DNA of 63,113 nucleotides, filler included, from Choristocarpus tenellus KU-1152 (lineage: Eukaryota; Protista; Phaeophyceae): NCBI GenBank assembly GCA_964200185.2. It is 12 parts of 12 records of this genome, joined end to end, with 100 filler letters (N's around TTAATTAATTAA, not from the genome) between each part and the next. Parts side by side here need not be neighbours in the genome. Positions count along the whole stretch, not along the records: positions 21,192 to 29,129 come from CAXNAD020005366.1; 11 more parts are not named here. The stretch is one strand, 5' to 3'. Numbering within the stretch: position 1 is the stretch's first letter; the number at the start of each line of letters is the position of its first letter. The notes beneath the pieces were generated by a model. The model did no database searches and had not been told where the DNA came from. It saw only the letters and a program-made list of their open reading frames with translations. Made by a program: the position numbers and the translations under genes. Shown here one piece after another: positions 21,092 through 29,229 of the stretch.

Positions 21092-21518
21092 NNNNNNNNN
21101 NNNNNNNNNNNNNNNNNNNNNNNNNNNNNNNNNNNTTAATTAATTAANNNNNNNNNNNNNNNNNNNNNNNNNNNNNNNNNNNNNNNNNNNNAGATGCCAG
21201 AATCTATAGATGTAAGGAAAAAGAAATGTTGTTGGACCTGGCTAGCTGTGGCACGGGAGGGAGTGGCCACGGAGATTAGACTGGGCAGTTGAAACGATAA
21301 TCGTGCTTCTGTCCGTGGGTCTGGTGTCGGGTTGAAATATTATTCCTCCTAGGTGAGGGAGCTTGACTGGTGCAATGACAGCATACCGACCGTATCTTGA
21401 TGTGTGGGGTGTCTTGTCGTGCGTACTACTACTACTACTACGACTGCACAAACACAAACACACACATACACACACGGGAAGCCTAATAAACGTTATTATT
21501 ACATAATCATTTGTAGAG

Positions 21519-21587
21519 ATATCATCCCTGCATCACTGAGGAATCTGCATCACCCTGAAAACTCATGTTTGAATATTCAGGTTATAG
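21519..21587 (+). pseudogene. Degenerate LRR exon relic
   Basis: AG|AT ATC ATC CCT..: IIPASLRNLHHPENSCLNIQVI aligns to the 22621 exon (EIPDSLQNLHHLKSLNVSNNQLY); one codon short and no GT donor. Confidence 0.5.
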
Positions 21588-22620
21588 AATGTGGTGGCCT
21601 TAGGGTTTATGGTGGACTGATTTGAAGGTTTTTCTGCTTCTTGTCCATCTGGCCCTATCTGTACTGCAGGCTGTATCCTTCTAACCCTAGTTGTATCTCA
21701 CGTCTCTATTTGTTTTTCTTTTTGTCAACTTGACCATTACAGTTCAATTATTTTGAAGACCTTTTGTGTGACCCACGCCTTTCTTTCATTGCCAATCATT
21801 AACGAATTTGTTGCAGCTTGGTGTTTTTGCATGTGGATGAAACAAATGCACAGTTTTTGTAGTGTCGATAAAAATTATACTATTCGCTTAGGTTAGGGTT
21901 AGGGTTAGGGTTAGGGTTCGGTAGTGTCTTGGCAAGCTCTGAAATATGTTTCATGTTGAAGGTGTTTTTTTTTAAGGATACCCAGAGCTTGGATAATCTT
22001 TTGATACTGCTAGAAAAGGAAGTATTGGCTAGGTGCTTCTATAAAACAATGTATGAAGTGTGGGAGCACAAATAACCTAAGCGTCAGAGTTGACCTGGAT
22101 GTGTTTATGTTGCCTTTTTGTTTAGGCGTGTCTGTGCACATATTTTTGATATAGATATGCGCACTGTCTTGAGTTGACTTGATTATCCATCTTGAATGAT
22201 CTCACTCTCTTCACCTTGGATTCTGTTCCTGTCCATCTCACCACTACTACCACATTCAGCGATCCGAGCCATCGATCAATTTACCTACATTTCATTATAT
22301 TTCCAAGTTAAATTCTCTATGAGTAACACTACTCCTGCCCTGTGTTGATCGCTTCACAGGGGACTCTACAACCTGTGCTATATTGGACCTAGCCCCTGAC
22401 CTCTCAGTCAATCTTGTGGAAGCTGCTGACTGTTGCTGCTCTTCCTTCTCCTTGACATGCCCCATCTCACTTATACTTTCACCCTTTAACCCTCTGTGTG
22501 CACCTTGAATTGACTAAAGATGTCCTGGATGTGTCTTGAATTGTGTGCCATATCAATGTAAATTTGATTATTGATTTTTTATATATCTGAGCATGTCAAA
22601 CTACAAAATACTTCCTACAT

Positions 22621-22692
22621 GGGAAATACCTGATTCACTGCAAAACCTTCATCACCTCAAAAGTCTAAATGTCAGCAATAATCAGCTTTATG
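22621..22692 (+). pseudogene. 72-nt LRR exon with non-canonical splice sites
   Basis: (G)EIPDSLQNLHHLKSLNVSNNQLY(G), intact frame; acceptor TTCCTACAT instead of TTCCTCACAG, donor GCAAGG. Confidence 0.7.
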
Positions 22693-23699
22693 GCAAGGAA
22701 TATTTGTGTTGTGTATGTGGTTGTTGTTGTGCTCTCCTGCTAGCTTTGTTAATGCAATCTGAGTCAGCATGAATGTTTCTTTATGGGTGACCCTTTGTTT
22801 TTCTGAGTTTGGTTTTTGTACCTCAAATTTCGTAAGGCCTTTGTGTGACTCCCTTTGTTTCGTGTTACAATTATTTCAACATGTTTTTATTGTTAATTAA
22901 TGCTTGATACAAGAAGAAATGCACATTGTATGTATAGTAATATCACTTGATGTAAACGGGGGCATTTTTTTGTGCTGGCCTCACCAGTGGAATTTGGATG
23001 TGGATTAGGTCATATCTATTGTACTATGTTGTATTTTTGTCACATTGTGGTGGATGTCAAATTGAGGTCAAGGTTCATTTTTTGATGATATTAACCCTAA
23101 CCCTTTGATGACATTTGGGTCATTGAATCTCTGAGTAAATTAGTTCATTTTTTGATGAATTGTTGTAAATTTGTGTACAAGGTGTGTTTTAATCAAATAT
23201 TGGAGACATGACATGTTGATTTGTATAATGTAGTTGATAATTGTGTAAATTATTAGCTAAGATACATCTCCAACTTGTTGCTGCACTTCTAACTTGTGTT
23301 TCTTGTAGAGGATAACCTTTTCGATGGTCTAGAACCTGTTTTTGTTTCCCTATTTGAAATTATCAACACACAAACATCTCTCAATTTATATAAACTATTG
23401 TCCGATCATGTGGTAACGCATTTTTTGGTATACATTCTTGTTTTGACTTTTTGGTTCCGACTAACACCCTCACACAATGACAAATGTGTTTCTATGGCCA
23501 CCCTGTTTGTCTAGGGCTTTTTGCTTTAGCAATATACTTACATTCTGAGTGTCTAATTTTCTTGCTACAAACGATTTTGCTGGAAATATCATGCTTTTTG
23601 AGGAAAAAATATACTGGCATTTCACCTGCCCGTGGGAACCTCTTGTTGTAGATTATAACTAAACACCTAACTGGTGTTAGAATATTTTATCAGCTCTAG

Positions 23700-26600
23700 T
23701 ACGGATAGGATGTGCACTGTGTTGGTATTTATTGGAAGCCTTAGTATGGACAGCTTGTGATCAATGTTGTGTAGTTATTTCATATATTGTTATTCTAAAG
23801 TCCAAAGTGTTCTTATTTCTGCATGCATTGGCCACTTCACGTTGCACTTGTTGATATTTTAATGTATTGTTGTTTCCAAATGTATTTTGCCACTGAACTT
23901 GGTTCCTCACAGGGACTATTCCTCTAGCCCTGGGCAACCTGCCAGTCCTTGCTCGTGTATCCCTGTTTGGGAATCAGCTTAGTGGTAAGTTTCTATTTGG
24001 ACATGAATTCTTTTGTAAATCTCTTCTTTCTCTCCTTTACCATTGACAACTCAAATGCCTCCCCCAACATGTCAGTTTTCTATTTGTAGCCTGTAAAATT
24101 TTGGATAGTTGTATTGTAGAAGTGATGCAATCAATTTCTTTTATAGGAGGAGTGTTCACAGAAGGGTTTGGCAAAGTGTGCAATACCCTTCTTCTCTACC
24201 AGTACATTTTTTTCTGATAAGAATCTACACTGTGTAATTCCGTGTAATGATGTTAGCCACAACAATGTAGTTATGAGGACTTTTTTTGGTGCAATCCTCA
24301 CTTGTTTTCAACATTTTTTCTGTTATTGTGGTATGTAGAATGCACCACGTTTTTTGTCAGTCTGGGCCAACAAGGTAATTTGTAATTGGTGACTGTACTG
24401 TTTTATTTCTGCATGCTTTGGTCACATTATGTTTGACTAATTGATATTTGTGTATTGTTGCATTTGAATATATCCTGCAACCCAACTTGGTTCCTCACAG
24501 GTACTATTCCTGAAGTGCTGGGCAAATTGCCTACCCTGTCAAGTCTATCCCTCCGCAATAATTATCTTGTTGGTAAGTGTCTATTTGGACATGTATTCTC
24601 TTCTTTGCAAATCTCTTCTTTCTTGCCCTTCCTGTTTGACTACTCCACTGCCTTTCAACATGCAAGCTTTTTATCTGTAGTCTGTGCCAGTTTTGACTGT
24701 GGAACTTCAGAAATGATAATATCATTTTCAATATTATACACACCAACCTATATCATGCAGGTTTGCTGTTATCAGTTGTAAGATTAGGAGTATTCACAGA
24801 AGGGCTGTTTGGCATGTTGTGGATTACCCTTGTCGACCTCTTGGAGGTGGTTTTTCTGACAACGTGCAGTGTGTATTTTAGGTGGGGGTTAGGGTTACAG
24901 CCAGAGTACTATGTTTTTTAACACTATTTTTTGTGGAATTTTCATTTTTATTCACAATATTGTCTCTAGTGTTGTGGTAGGCAGAATGAGCCAGGATGTT
25001 TATTTGTGTCTGAATTTATACGGCATTTAATACATTTTTATTCTAATGACATAAGTGTTTTAATTTCTGCATGCTTTGAGCACTTCACATTTGACTCATT
25101 TTTTTGTTTCGTGGAACTGAACTTCGTTCCTCACAGGGACTATTCCTGAAGCGCTTGGTAACCTGCCTGCACTGGCTGTATTAGACCTGTCTTCCAATCT
25201 GCTTAGTGGTAAGTGTCTATTTGGGCATATATTCTGCTTTTTTCAAGTCTCTTCTTTTTTGCCTTTCTGGCTTAACTACTCAAATTACCTTCTTACATGG
25301 ATTGTTGTGATGTCAAAATTATCAAGATTTTTTTTTTTTGTATCTAGTAGATTGTTTTGCTGTTAATTAGTTACAAGATGAGGGCTGTTTGACCTACTGT
25401 GCATTACCCTTCTTGTCTACCTCTAGATTGTGTCTTTTCTGAGCAAGAGTATGCAATGTGTATTTCAGTTGGGATCATGTTATTCACAGTACTATGTTTT
25501 GAACAATACTTGTTATTTTGTGGAATTTTGACTTAAATTCACAACCTTGTCTCTGGTATCGTTGTGGTAAGCAGAATGAGTAAATATATTTGTTGTGTTT
25601 GAGATAAGGTACTTCAAAAATTGTGATTCTAATATCAGAAGTGTTTTTATTTTTGCGTTCTTGACTACGTTACATTTTCTACAAATTGATATTCATGTAT
25701 TTTTGGTTTGAATGTATGATGTAACTCAACTTGATTCCTCACAGGGCCTATTCCTGAAGTGCTAGGCAGCCTACCTGCACTGACTGAACTAGACCTGTCT
25801 TCGAATGAGCTTAGTGGTAAGTGCCTATTTTGACATGTATTCTGCTCTTTGCAGTTGCCTTCCAACATGGCAGTTTTGCACCTGCATCCTGTAAAATGTT
25901 ACTCTGTTGTGATGTTGAAACGGCAAAAATCCCTTCATTTGATGTCTAGTATGCTAACATAGTGCAGGTTGTTTTGCTGTTGATTAGTTACAAGATGAGT
26001 GTTCACAGAATGGCTGTTTGGCGTGCTGTGCAGTACCCATCTTGTCTACCTCTAATGACTTTTCTGAGGAAGAGAATTAGATGTATATTTGTGGTGAGAT
26101 TGTATTAGTCACCGAACTATGTTTTTAAAAAACATGTTTTTGTGGAATTTTCATTTTTGTCCAAAACCTTATCTCTGGTGTTGTTGTGGTTAGCAGAATA
26201 ACAGAACATATTTGTTGTGTCTGAGATAGTAAGATATTTCATAACTTGTGATTCCAAATACAGTGTTTATTATTGCATGCTTTGGCTATTTCACATTTGA
26301 ATAGTTGATATTCATTTTGTGTGGCCTTGAATGACTGTATTATGGAACTTAACTTGGTTCCTCACAGGGAATATTCCTGAAGCGCTCGGCAGCCTGCCTG
26401 TACTGACTGAGCTAGTCCTGTCTTCCAATCAGCTTACTGGTAAGTCTCTATTTGGATACATATTCTGCATTTTGCATATCTCTTCTTTCCGGCCTCTCCT
26501 CTTTCTGTACAAAAATTACCTGCCAATATGCCAGTTTTCCATCTGCATCCTTTAAAATGACGACTGTTGTAATGTTGAAATAGTGAATTCCCGTCTTTTG

Positions 26601-27460
26601 ATATCTAGTATACTAACATAATGCAGGTTGTTTTGCTGTTGATTGGTTATGAGATGAGTGTTAGAAGAGTTGTTTAGCGTACTGTGTGTTATGGGATTAG
26701 GTTAGCCACCGTACTATGATTTTGAGAACTACTTTTTTGTGGAATTTTCACTTTTATTCAACCTCATCTCTGGTGTCGTGGTAAGCAGAATGAGCTAACA
26801 TATTTTTTATTCTGAGATGAGGTATTCATAAATCGTGATTCCAATGAAAATAGTGTTTTTTGTGCATTCTTTGGCTACTTCACATTTGACAAGTTGATAT
26901 TTGTTTAGTGTTTATTTTGAATTTACTATGGAACTGAACTTGATTTCACACAGGGACTATTCCTGAAGCGCTCGGCAACCTGCCAGTCCTTGCTAAGCTA
27001 TCCCTGTTCAATAATCAGCTCAGTGGTAAGTTTCCTTTTTGGCGTACATTCAGCTTTTTCAAATGTCTTATTTCTGGCCTTTCCTGCTCGATAACTCAAA
27101 TGCCTTCCAACATGTCAGTTGTCTCTTGTAGCCTGTAAATTGTCAGATTGTTGTAATTTAGAACTGGTGAAATCCCTACGTTTGATATCTAGTATATTGC
27201 AATCATGCAGATTGTTTTGCTGTCCATTAGTGACAACAGAAGGATTGTTAAGAGAACAGTTAGTCAGAGCACTATATTTATCAACCTTTTTTTGGTCCAG
27301 TCGTCACTTATTTAACAACCTTGTCTCTGATGTTGTGGTAAGCAAAATGTGCCAACATGCTTGGTCCGTGTAAGCCTGTGAGATATTTCTTCATTTGTGA
27401 TTCCGATGTGAAACGGTTTCATAATTGCATGCCCAGGCCATTTCACGTTTGACTAATAGT
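23700..27460 (+). repeat. Tandem array of ~600-bp LRR exon+intron units
   Basis: Exon start spacings are 588, 636, 608, 623 and 586 bp. Introns share blocks: GTAAGTGTCTATTTGGACAT, GTGGAATTTTCA, GTTGTGGTAAGCAGAATGAG, GGAACTGAACTTGGTTCCTCACAG. Confidence 0.93.
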
Positions 27461-28919
27461 GTTCACTCTTGAATTTAACAAATTTTGTGACTTGCTCTGT
27501 TTCTGCTGAGCAATTAACATTTGTTTTCTGTTTTCTATAGTTTACTCTGATATTAGTGGAATATCCCATCATTTTTGTTTTGTGTCTGGTGTTCCAATTT
27601 GTGCTGTGCTTTTCCGACAAATTTCTAACTTGCCCTCCTGTGTGCTGGACTTGTTAAACATTTCATTGTTTCTTTTTTTGAGCCTTTTCCAATAGAATGT
27701 GATTGGCCATAGTAGGGTTGAGTTGCTTGATGTGGTGTGCTCTTTCTCAGTTGTTTTGACAATAAAATATTTTTGGCTTGTGACTACACCTTAACCTCCA
27801 ACTTTTTTTTTCCTGTTGTAATTGCTCAACATCTAATTTTTTAAATCAGATTTTTCAAAGGAGGCAGCCCTACGATTTCAAGCATGCAAGGACCTGAGAT
27901 TTACCGATTTCTCCTCTAACAATTGGGTGAATCCCCCAGCTGACGTTGTGGAAGGTGGTCTTGAGGCTATTGTTCGTTATCATGAGGCCATTGAACGCTC
28001 TGGGTCCATCAAATCTTACAGACTTAAGGTGGTTCTTGTTGGAGAGGTTTGTGCAGGCAAGACTAGCCTGGCCCGGAGTATGATGGCAGGCAAGCCTGAT
28101 TTGGCTGGAGCAGATCATCGTACTCGAGGGGTGGATATACATCCCTGGAAGCCCAACCTTGATGAGGTACTAGAGTTAGTGTTGTGGGACACTGGCGCAC
28201 ACAAGGAGTACGACTCTATGCGTCCTTTTTTGCTCACTTGGGGTGCTTTGTATCTTCTTGTGGTTGATCTCTACATTCTTTCCCAGAGTGAGTCAGACAG
28301 AGGCCTGAGTGTTTACAGGTGGCTTGATGCATTACTGTGCCGGGTGCCTGGCTGCTCTGTTCTTGTTGTTGGGACACATATTGACCTCATGGGGGGTGAG
28401 GATGAGGTTAAGGATGCTGTAAGTGAGCTTGAATGCTTGATTGGTCAACACTTGAAATCCAAAGGTGCTGAGATGGATCGGGTTGTTTCTAAGCAGCAGC
28501 AGGAGTGGAGTGAGGGTAAGATGGGGGAGATTCAACCAGTAGCAGATCTTCACATCTTAGGAGTGATGTCTGTCTCCTGTTACACAGGAGACAGGTTGGG
28601 TGCTGTTCGGGAGAAGATTGTGGATCTTGTGATGCGTGAACAAAGTCCTGGCTCAGAGAAAAATCGCCATTTTCCCTCTGTGGGTCAGGTTATCCCAATG
28701 TCATGGGCAAGGGCATCTGCTGTGATGGTTGCCCTGCGTGATGGATTGGACCCATTGATGGCAGGAAGCAAAACGAATGAAGTGTCACAATCCAAGAGTG
28801 AAGGTGAAAGCTTGCCATTTCTGCATTGGGAGGATGCTGTGAAGAAGTGGAAAGAGGTTTGGAATAAGAGTGACTGGCGAGATAATGTGGAAGATACTGA
28901 TGTCTCTGTGTATCTGAAG
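23913..28919 (+). CDS. LRR-ROC(-COR) GTPase of the ROCO family, partial
   Basis: Six 72-nt phase-1 LRR exons, all CAG|...G|GTAAG: 23913-23984, 24501-24572, 25137-25208, 25745-25816, 26368-26439, 26954-27025. They splice in frame to exon 27850-28919, which carries the ROC domain. 5' exon unresolved; 3' exons lie beyond the contig. Confidence 0.92.
27850..28919 (+). CDS. ROC GTPase exon with start of COR domain
   Basis: NNWVNPPADVVEGGLEAIVRY linker; P-loop KVVLVGEVCAGKTSL; RTRGVDI; LWDTGAH; VGTHID; VSC; FPSVGQVIPMSW. Acceptor AATCAG|AT, donor AAG|GTGGGT. Confidence 0.92.
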
Positions 28920-29229
28920 GTGGGTAACTGCTTTTTGGTGCGGTTGCTGAGTTCTGTGTCACTTTGAAGGATTACAAACTTAGCCAAAGGGTAGTCTACT
29001 AGTCTATACATAGAGATGCTACCTGATAGGCTCATCCACTTTGTTTTCATAGTGACGGGAATGAAGAGCTGATTGCAATTGAAAATGAGTGCACCCTTCA
29101 GTCATATATCTGTCCTCTGCCCACCTCCCNNNNNNNNNNNNNNNNNNNNNNNNNNNNNNNNNNNNNNNNNNNNTTAATTAATTAANNNNNNNNNNNNNNN
29201 NNNNNNNNNNNNNNNNNNNNNNNNNNNNN

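Follow-up and report, generated by a model that had tools for sequence, protein, structure and literature searches.

Positions 21192-29129 of the stretch of DNA analysed here (the window, 63,113 nucleotides in all) are the entire contig CAXNAD020005366.1 of the brown alga Choristocarpus tenellus, from assembly GCA_964200185.2. This contig of 7,938 bp (38% GC) holds most of a germline LRR-Roc(-COR) gene, a member of the brown-algal ROCO family of candidate cytoplasmic receptors. Six exons of 72 nucleotides each encode one leucine-rich repeat (LRR), and a long exon with a Roc GTPase domain follows. Between the repeats, the codons for the ligand face have changed faster than neutral sites, and those for the structural scaffold far slower.

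The explanation that we consider likely as a whole is a germline gene in which LRR cassettes were duplicated and came under diversifying selection at the ligand face. The array stems from tandem duplication of a unit of exon plus intron, about 600 bp long, for which unequal crossing-over between repeated introns would be the simplest route. Once the copies existed, purifying selection kept the structural scaffold G.IP..LG.L..L..L.L..N.L, and diversifying selection altered the residues on or beside the beta-strand of the concave face (positions 14, 15, 17, 19 and 20). Given the symmetric phase, repeat number and order can evolve freely, and splicing could vary both. The LRRs would sense a ligand, and signalling would go through the GTPase. 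Regulated splicing of cassettes is plausible as an added layer; somatic rearrangement is unlikely.

The gene is a further example of a known brown-algal design, and brings no new mechanism. What is new is the early-diverging lineage, and the contrast between intron and exon divergence. Following current phycology, we take Choristocarpus to belong to the Discosporangiales. According to the Phaeoexplorer preprint, this was the first lineage to diverge from all other brown algae; the preprint mentions ROCO orthogroups only as expanded families. Neither Choristocarpus or its order, nor a comparison of intron with exon divergence, is found in the two earlier studies of these genes, Zambounis et al. 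2012 (PMC3341825) and Teng et al. 2024 (PMC11378527).

A duplicated array of cassettes

The six LRR exons, or cassettes, lie on the plus strand, and all are 72 nucleotides long. Exon 1 (phase 1-1, GTIPLALGNLPVLARVSLFGNQLS) is at 23913-23984, exon 2 (GTIPEVLGKLPTLSSLSLRNNYLV) at 24501-24572 and exon 3 (GTIPEALGNLPALAVLDLSSNLLS) at 25137-25208. Exon 4 (GPIPEVLGSLPALTELDLSSNELS), which is the first exon of the deposited gene model, is at 25745-25816. Exon 5 (GNIPEALGSLPVLTELVLSSNQLT), intact but skipped by that model, is at 26368-26439, and exon 6 (GTIPEALGNLPVLAKLSLFNNQLS) is at 26954-27025. From start to start the spacings are 588, 636, 608, 623 and 586 nucleotides. An earlier reading of the window, made from the sequence alone, had described six symmetric phase-1 exons of 72 nucleotides in units of about 600 bp. 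All its details were confirmed, with units of about 590-640 bp, and the LRR strings that it listed match the cassette translations exactly.

Acceptors are pyrimidine-rich: exons 1-5 are preceded by (t)tcctcacag and exon 6 by tttcacacag, and the donor gtaagt follows all six. Each cassette shares a glycine codon (G|GG or G|GT) with its neighbours, with two bases of it at the start and one at the end. Because this codon is split 1|2 at each border, the flanking introns are phase 1 on both sides in the standard convention. Both earlier studies describe the identical codon split under other phase names ('phase 2', 'phase 0 exons'). Any join between two cassettes gives glycine, and any join of a cassette to the Roc exon, which opens with AT at 27850, gives aspartate. 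The symmetric phase makes the gain, loss or skipping of a cassette frame-neutral. The earlier claim that any cassette can be skipped, duplicated or swapped without a frameshift is therefore correct, with the glycine codon restored at each exon-exon join.

Each cassette encodes one 24-residue repeat of the plant-specific type, G-x-I-P-x-x-L-G-x-L-P-x-L-x-x-L-x-L-x-x-N-x-L-x. The type I motif GxxPxxLxxxxxLxxLxLxxNxLx fits all six translations, and G1, I3, P4, L7, G8, L10, L13, L18, N21 and L23 are invariant.

The units of exon plus intron can still be aligned, as had been claimed, with introns that are 61-80% identical in pairwise comparison. A profile of the unit (nhmmer) recovers every one at E=1e-155 to 1e-182, and unit-like sequence runs from 23773 to 27473. 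The plus-strand segment 23773-23912, ahead of exon 1, matches unit-profile positions 522-659 with E=3.9e-26. It is the 3' end of an intron and a homologue of the same part of the unit introns. The last intron of the array, at 27026-27849 on the plus strand, is 824 nucleotides long; it is unit-like up to about 27473 and then unique, up to its acceptor aatcag.

All units of the array are on one strand, and their introns are about 30% diverged. Signs of recent shuffling would be cassettes, intact or inactivated, lying within introns and often on the opposite strand, and the array has neither: no cassette was found on the minus strand or within the unit introns of this locus. With introns and synonymous sites equally diverged (0.42 versus 0.44), the array is old, and as far as the present data go it looks static.

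Exons 1 and 6 are 82% identical, against 68-70% for their introns. Gene conversion was considered as the reason and rejected: constraint on the scaffold alone lifts exon identity.

Selection on the ligand face

The exposed class of codons was fixed beforehand as the five x of xxLxLxx, which are repeat positions 14, 15, 17, 19 and 20. Work on plant LRRs takes the same class, as do both brown-alga studies (PMC3341825, PMC11378527). Divergence at nonsynonymous (dN) and synonymous (dS) sites was computed by the Nei-Gojobori method, for the six exons in the window and for 12 units on four further Choristocarpus contigs, the paralogs described below. The scaffold was taken as 11 codons.

For the exposed codons dN is 1.15 in the window and 1.02 in the paralogs. 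For the scaffold codons it is 0.015 and 0.044, where dS is 0.44 and 0.41. Intron diversity is 0.32 in the window (about 0.42 when corrected) and 0.116 in the paralogs. In the window, exposed codons have thus changed about 2-2.7 times as much as both neutral yardsticks, the introns and the synonymous sites of the scaffold, and replacements in the scaffold run about 30 times under the synonymous rate. In the paralogs, the exposed codons stand at about 5 times intron diversity uncorrected, and about 8 times corrected.

Fitch counts of changes per site were also made, each on a tree built from the locus's own introns, for the window and for the paralog contig L001, which has five units. Intron sites have 0.95 changes per site in the window and 0.24 in L001; third codon positions have 1.0 and 0.61. 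The first and second positions of scaffold codons have 0.56 in the window, slower than introns (P=0.003), and 0.44 in L001. The same positions of exposed codons have 1.8 in the window (P=0.005 against random intron columns) and 2.0 in L001 (P<5e-5).

A ratio of dN to dS at or below 1 at the exposed positions, which would have spoken against the earlier reading, is thus not what was found: the exposed dN of 1.15 compares with about 0.42-0.44 at neutral sites, and the Fitch count agrees. An AlphaFold2 model of the deposited protein places the beta-strand of each repeat on positions 15-17, with a predicted local distance difference test score (pLDDT) above 90 in the LRR part. Ligand-face diversification on a constrained scaffold is supported.

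The ligand face had been called hypervariable. This is right for the old paralogous repeats within one germline gene, but it does not extend to allelic or somatic variation.

The same variable positions might instead have drifted under relaxed constraint, or the gene might be a decaying pseudogene, with no positive selection in either case. In favour of this, the gene is modelled only in part, there are two decayed LRR-like relics upstream, switch II has lost its glycine, and the selection measures come from saturated distances and a small sample. We nevertheless regard drift or decay as very unlikely. Neutral drift does not account for exposed codons that change at about 2-2.7 times the neutral rate (P=0.005), for a corrected dN in the paralogs of about 8 times intron diversity, or for scaffold replacements about 30 times below the synonymous rate. 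A decaying gene would also hardly keep six cassettes and a Roc exon of 356 codons open with all splice sites intact.

Paralogs in Choristocarpus

Four more contigs of this species (L001-L004) carry 72-nucleotide cassettes upstream of a Roc exon, on one strand, spaced 639-654 nucleotides apart. Their Roc exons are 74-75% identical to that of the window, and 88-93% to each other. The stretches compared are L001:3658-6900, L002:411-1000, L003:6806-8100 and L004:1462-4000. The introns behind these cassettes (about 570 nucleotides) are 90-95% identical within and between contigs, but the cassettes just 65-88%. This diversity is limited to exon nucleotides 1-6, which cover the x of GxIP, and to nucleotides 31-72. 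Exon nucleotides 7-30 and the flanking intron vary no more than the remaining intron. The array in the window does not have this contrast between introns and exons. A protein search with the LRR part of one paralog found no additional Choristocarpus loci; its matches were mainly plant receptor kinases and bacterial LRR proteins.

The paralogs raise the question of whether their introns are kept alike. Conversion or unequal exchange could homogenise the introns, with selection rejecting conversion of the ligand face, as has been proposed for HLA introns; mutation targeted at the exons would be another way to a similar pattern. Paralog introns that are as alike as the Roc exons, around far more diverse cassettes, fit such a process, as does the confinement of diversity to the two exon segments. 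In addition, third positions of ten scaffold codons with conserved amino acids differ about twice as much as the introns (0.21 versus 0.116, P=0.04). Yet this synonymous excess rests on 10 sites, the four paralog contigs may include alleles, and the array in the window, where introns have diverged as much as synonymous sites, has no sign of homogenisation. Most of the pattern is explained by a recent burst of duplication followed by strong selection. The third-position excess is only suggestive as between these two histories, and we think it improbable that protection against homogenisation is the fuller account of the diversity.

About 130 nucleotides of intron 3' end before each cassette are conserved between the units of the window and the paralog subfamily (for example 23783-23912, 24371-24500 and 26824-26953). 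Elsewhere the introns of the two subfamilies can hardly be aligned. The conserved block has a branch-like site, ctgaac or ctcaac, near -20. The hexamer TGCATG is found near -90 of the cassettes in 4 of 6 window units and 11 of 12 paralog units. Conceivably, though we doubt it, the cassette introns in Choristocarpus are working parts of a diversification system, either as homology tracts for frequent unequal exchange or conversion by which cassettes are reshuffled, or as splicing control elements that select cassettes.

The same layout is found outside Choristocarpus. Ectocarpus fasciculatus (L005), Laminaria digitata (L006) and a contig of a Logan assembly (L008) all have 72-nucleotide cassettes with AG/GT borders upstream of Roc. 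The Laminaria locus (CAXNAO020007449.1) has seven cassettes on the strand of the gene, six of them bordered by AG/GT and one with GG at the donor place. It also has ten further intact cassettes on the opposite strand, and its spacing is irregular, at 205-815 nucleotides. This is the 'shuffled' picture known from Ectocarpus, whereas the Choristocarpus arrays are regular and one-stranded. Intact cassettes on the opposite strand were found in none of the Choristocarpus contigs examined.

Gene model, splicing and rearrangement

A word search with the Roc exon returned a deposited protein, here P0001, as a 100% identical match. It has 352 amino acids and is described as 'unnamed protein product, partial [Choristocarpus tenellus]'. 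Its gene model spans only 25738-28754: it starts with exon 4, joins this to exon 6, and ends inside the Roc exon. It is incomplete at both ends, leaves out exons 1-3, and skips exon 5 even though this is intact. The reading with six exons is more complete than the deposited model.

The skipped exon could also be taken at face value. One gene might yield many isoforms if cassettes are skipped or chosen in combinations, as an active splicing repertoire on top of germline evolution. The common phase keeps every such combination in frame, and splice variants of Ectocarpus ROCO genes with different LRR content have been described (PMC11378527). The intron block with TGCATG that is conserved between subfamilies upstream of every cassette would suit regulated splicing as well. 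However, the basis on which P0001 passes over exon 5 is not given, and the model is partial. The splice sites are equally strong in all six cassettes. No docking or selector complementarity of the kind known from Dscam was found either; the scan was for inverted repeats, not a dedicated search for RNA pairing, and gave only short imperfect pairs of 14-26 nucleotides that are 73-93% complementary. These pairs are at chance level and none recurs at the conserved intron block. On balance an active repertoire strikes us as rather unlikely.

Only two public runs contain this stretch (X1 and X2); both are DNA-like, and they come from one study. A contig of 5,791 nucleotides from X1 is colinear with 23800-28225, with four single-base differences in introns and no gaps or joints in the array. 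The X2 contigs, at a depth of 3-8x, tile the array in order, colinear with the window. X2 leaves 25520-25691 uncovered, and has contig ends at 25518 and 25828, with exon 4 between them. Within the array, the DNA contigs of neither run have spliced joints. This colinearity speaks for the assembly, and nothing in it points to rearranged copies, though rare variants are invisible in contigs.

The X2 contigs that end at 25518 and 25828, on either side of exon 4, continue for at least 255 nucleotides into unlike sequence. These loose ends match nothing in the window or in any locus that was fetched. A structural difference between the two samples is the less likely reading, given the low depth and the unit-repeated neighbours. 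They are most likely pieces of paralogous units, because the sequences that adjoin them recur in every unit.

Such ends are also what one would cite for a different mechanism. In 2012 the idea was raised for Ectocarpus that cassettes are rearranged or converted somatically, within the individual, much as in the lamprey variable lymphocyte receptors (PMC3341825). Apart from that published speculation, the cassette architecture alone and the unlike sequence around exon 4 would speak for it here. But the cassettes have full splice sites and sit in an ordinary gene of introns and exons, the one long X1 contig crosses the array without a joint, and the X2 contigs keep the same order, with the reservation on rare variants just made. 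The loose ends adjoin unit-repeated sequence and are better understood as paralog pieces. For brown algae, somatic recombinants are so far unreported (PMC11378527). We consider somatic rearrangement extremely improbable. The sequence-only reading had inferred a receptor-diversification locus and named several combinatorial mechanisms for it. The locus offers no sign of ongoing shuffling: its units are about 30% diverged and on one strand, and the contigs of both runs are colinear with it.

The GTPase end of the gene

The Roc exon lies at 27850-28919 on the plus strand. Its 1070 nucleotides are open over 356 codons, with phase 1 on entry and phase 0 on exit. They code for a last, irregular LRR, followed by the Roc GTPase and what looks like the beginning of COR-A (about 28660-28919). 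The Roc domain matches Pfam PF08477 with E=5e-14 and 53 bits, against a cut-off of 27, over residues 59-178, or 28026-28385, which is well outside what chance would give. With an LRR array followed by Roc, the assignment to a ROCO-type gene made from sequence is borne out, as is the brown-algal origin; the layout is as described for Ectocarpus (PMC3341825) and three further brown algae (PMC11378527). Downstream, the plus-strand segment 28920-29129 is the start of the next intron, with donor gtgggt. The contig stops there, 210 nucleotides 3' of the Roc exon, and the remaining COR is past its end. The exon that follows Roc in paralog L003 lies 1.8 kb further on.

An AlphaFold2 model of the Roc exon, built on an alignment of 30 sequences, has a mean pLDDT of 82. 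The top Foldseek matches of this model are LRRK2, LRRK1 and the RocCOR of Methanosarcina barkeri Roco2. With VIA-align, 254-278 residues in model range 1-356 align to LRRK2 1284-1574, with Z of about 20 and a root-mean-square deviation of about 3 Å. For plain small GTPases only some 165 residues align, in model range 55-265, with Z of about 18.5-19. The last 90 or so residues of the model are aligned to the first part of LRRK2 COR-A, as far as residue 1574. As the alignments to ROCO proteins are far longer than those to small GTPases, the exon looks as if it carries the beginning of COR-A after Roc.

The Roc domain of the window retains its P-loop, switch I (RTRG), THxD and SC motifs. Switch II, at 28185-28202 on the plus strand, reads WDTGAH. 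The Choristocarpus paralogs have WDFGAH or WDFVAH, and the other relatives in the alignment, from further brown algae and assemblies, have WDFAGH in 25 out of 25 cases. The glycine of DxxG, equivalent to Ras G60, is alanine in all five Choristocarpus ROCOs, where it is preceded by glycine or valine. The canonical DxxG switch II of ROCO proteins is hence absent from the window. This departure is a difference within the family, and no ground for excluding the gene from ROCO.

Several points count against the explanation given at the start. To our knowledge, a ligand or an immune role is yet to be demonstrated for brown-algal ROCOs. The deposited model uses just exon 4, exon 6 and the Roc exon, and the 5' end of the gene and most of COR are not on the contig. 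Judging from the motif, the loss of DxxG in all Choristocarpus members means that GTPase cycling may differ from the normal. The selection test covers 5 codons in 6 repeats, with saturated distances and pairwise values that are not independent, and the gap-free intron columns used as its yardstick may lean towards conserved sites. Lastly, the Pfam COR profile has no match in the exon downstream of Roc in paralog L003. That last result agrees with earlier work, in which only 18 of 111 brown-algal ROCOs match this profile (PMC11378527).

Relation to known systems

ROCO genes of this kind are known from Ectocarpus, where the 72-nucleotide 'type I LRR exon', its shuffling and positive selection on the concave face were described, together with the speculation on somatic recombination (PMC3341825). 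Later work confirmed the layout in four brown algae, by adding Saccharina japonica, Cladosiphon okamuranus and Nemacystus decipiens. It also reported splice variants with different cassette content, and knew of no somatic recombinants (PMC11378527). The positively selected sites of that study (14, 16, 18 and 19 in its 23-residue numbering) are positions 15, 17, 19 and 20 in the LRRs of the window.

The window and these type I genes are alike in having one LRR per 72-nucleotide exon, the same motif, a single phase, an LRR array followed by Roc, and selection on the concave face. Proteins of Ectocarpus and Laminaria match the Roc exon at 37-45% identity. There are also differences. Choristocarpus split off earlier than the brown-algal orders studied so far, and its genome is AT-rich (38% GC, versus 51-52%). 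Its cassettes sit in regular tandem units of 590-650 bp that can still be aligned and lie on one strand, unlike those of Laminaria with its ten cassettes on the opposite strand. Its switch II has DxGA, where other brown algae have DxAG.

This means that a cassette design earlier described in the Ectocarpales and Laminariales is now seen in Choristocarpus with identical exon length, phase and selected positions. The unusually regular arrays of this alga are well suited to measuring the growth and divergence of cassette arrays. Within the one species, they also offer a contrast between a gene with old, diverged units and paralogs with near-identical introns around strongly diverged cassettes.

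Uniform LRR exons also occur outside the brown algae. LRR genes of Tetrahymena have arrays of exons of exactly 90 bp, which grew by duplication of intron-exon units through ectopic recombination (PMC6564038). They share with the window a uniform exon length, one phase throughout and unit duplication. They differ by their 90-bp exons, phase-2 introns, exons that are out of register with the repeats, and the lack of Roc. Because the lineage is unrelated, these arrays have an independent origin.

LRRK2, LRRK1 and prokaryotic Roco proteins (PDB 8u8b, 8e05, 4wnr) have the same order of LRR, then Roc, then COR. Sequence identity to the window is about 20%, and the window differs from them in its plant-specific 24-residue LRRs and in its cassette gene structure. 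We know of no kinase, ankyrin or WD40 parts in brown-algal ROCOs.

The variable lymphocyte receptors of lampreys and hagfish resemble the window in that LRR cassettes vary in their concave-face residues. Their genes are assembled somatically from flanking cassettes, which have no splice sites. The cassettes in the window, by contrast, are ordinary germline exons, and the DNA contigs hold them in one arrangement.

Plant LRR receptors and NLRs have the same 24-residue repeat, LxxLxLxxNxLsGxIPxxLGxL, with diversifying selection on xxLxLxx. The model of P0001 also has a second short strand at xLsG, as in the plant-specific LRR class. In plants, LRR domains are mostly encoded in one or a few large exons, and are joined to a kinase or NB-ARC rather than to Roc.

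Other features of the contig

Two LRR-like elements lie upstream of the array, both on the plus strand and both of a different LRR subtype (IPxSLxNLHH) from the array. The first, at 21519-21590, is a decayed relic (DIIPASLRNLHH...) with an indel relative to the second. It resembles that element through IPxSLxNLHH and then lacks the LxLxxN core, and is probably an inactivated cassette.

The second element, at 22593-22692 (WEIPDSLQNLHHLKSLNVSNNQLY+G), was found by nhmmer with E=0.029, and its equivalent of the 72-nucleotide cassette is 22621-22692. It has no AG at the canonical acceptor place, which reads cat|gg, and its donor is GCAAGG. There is an in-frame ATG at 22593, with an AG at 22590-91. 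The element may be a dead cassette, or else a 5' exon whose boundaries are unusual. No specific counterpart of it was found in the paralog loci. There are no further intact cassettes in 21192-23772.

Using blastn, the flanks of the two relics were compared with each other, and the introns of the window with those of the paralogs. This gave only telomere-like hexamers and one match of 53 nucleotides at the intron 3' end. Rfam has no match anywhere in the 7,938-bp piece.

Short interstitial telomere-like repeats occur at a few places on the contig: (GGTTAG)x4.7 at 21891-21918, its complement CCCTAACCCTAAC at 23092-23104, and, within the intron of the second unit, GGGTTAGGGTTA at 24884-24897. The microsatellites (TAC)x7 and (CA)n lie at 21424-21475, close to where the contig begins.

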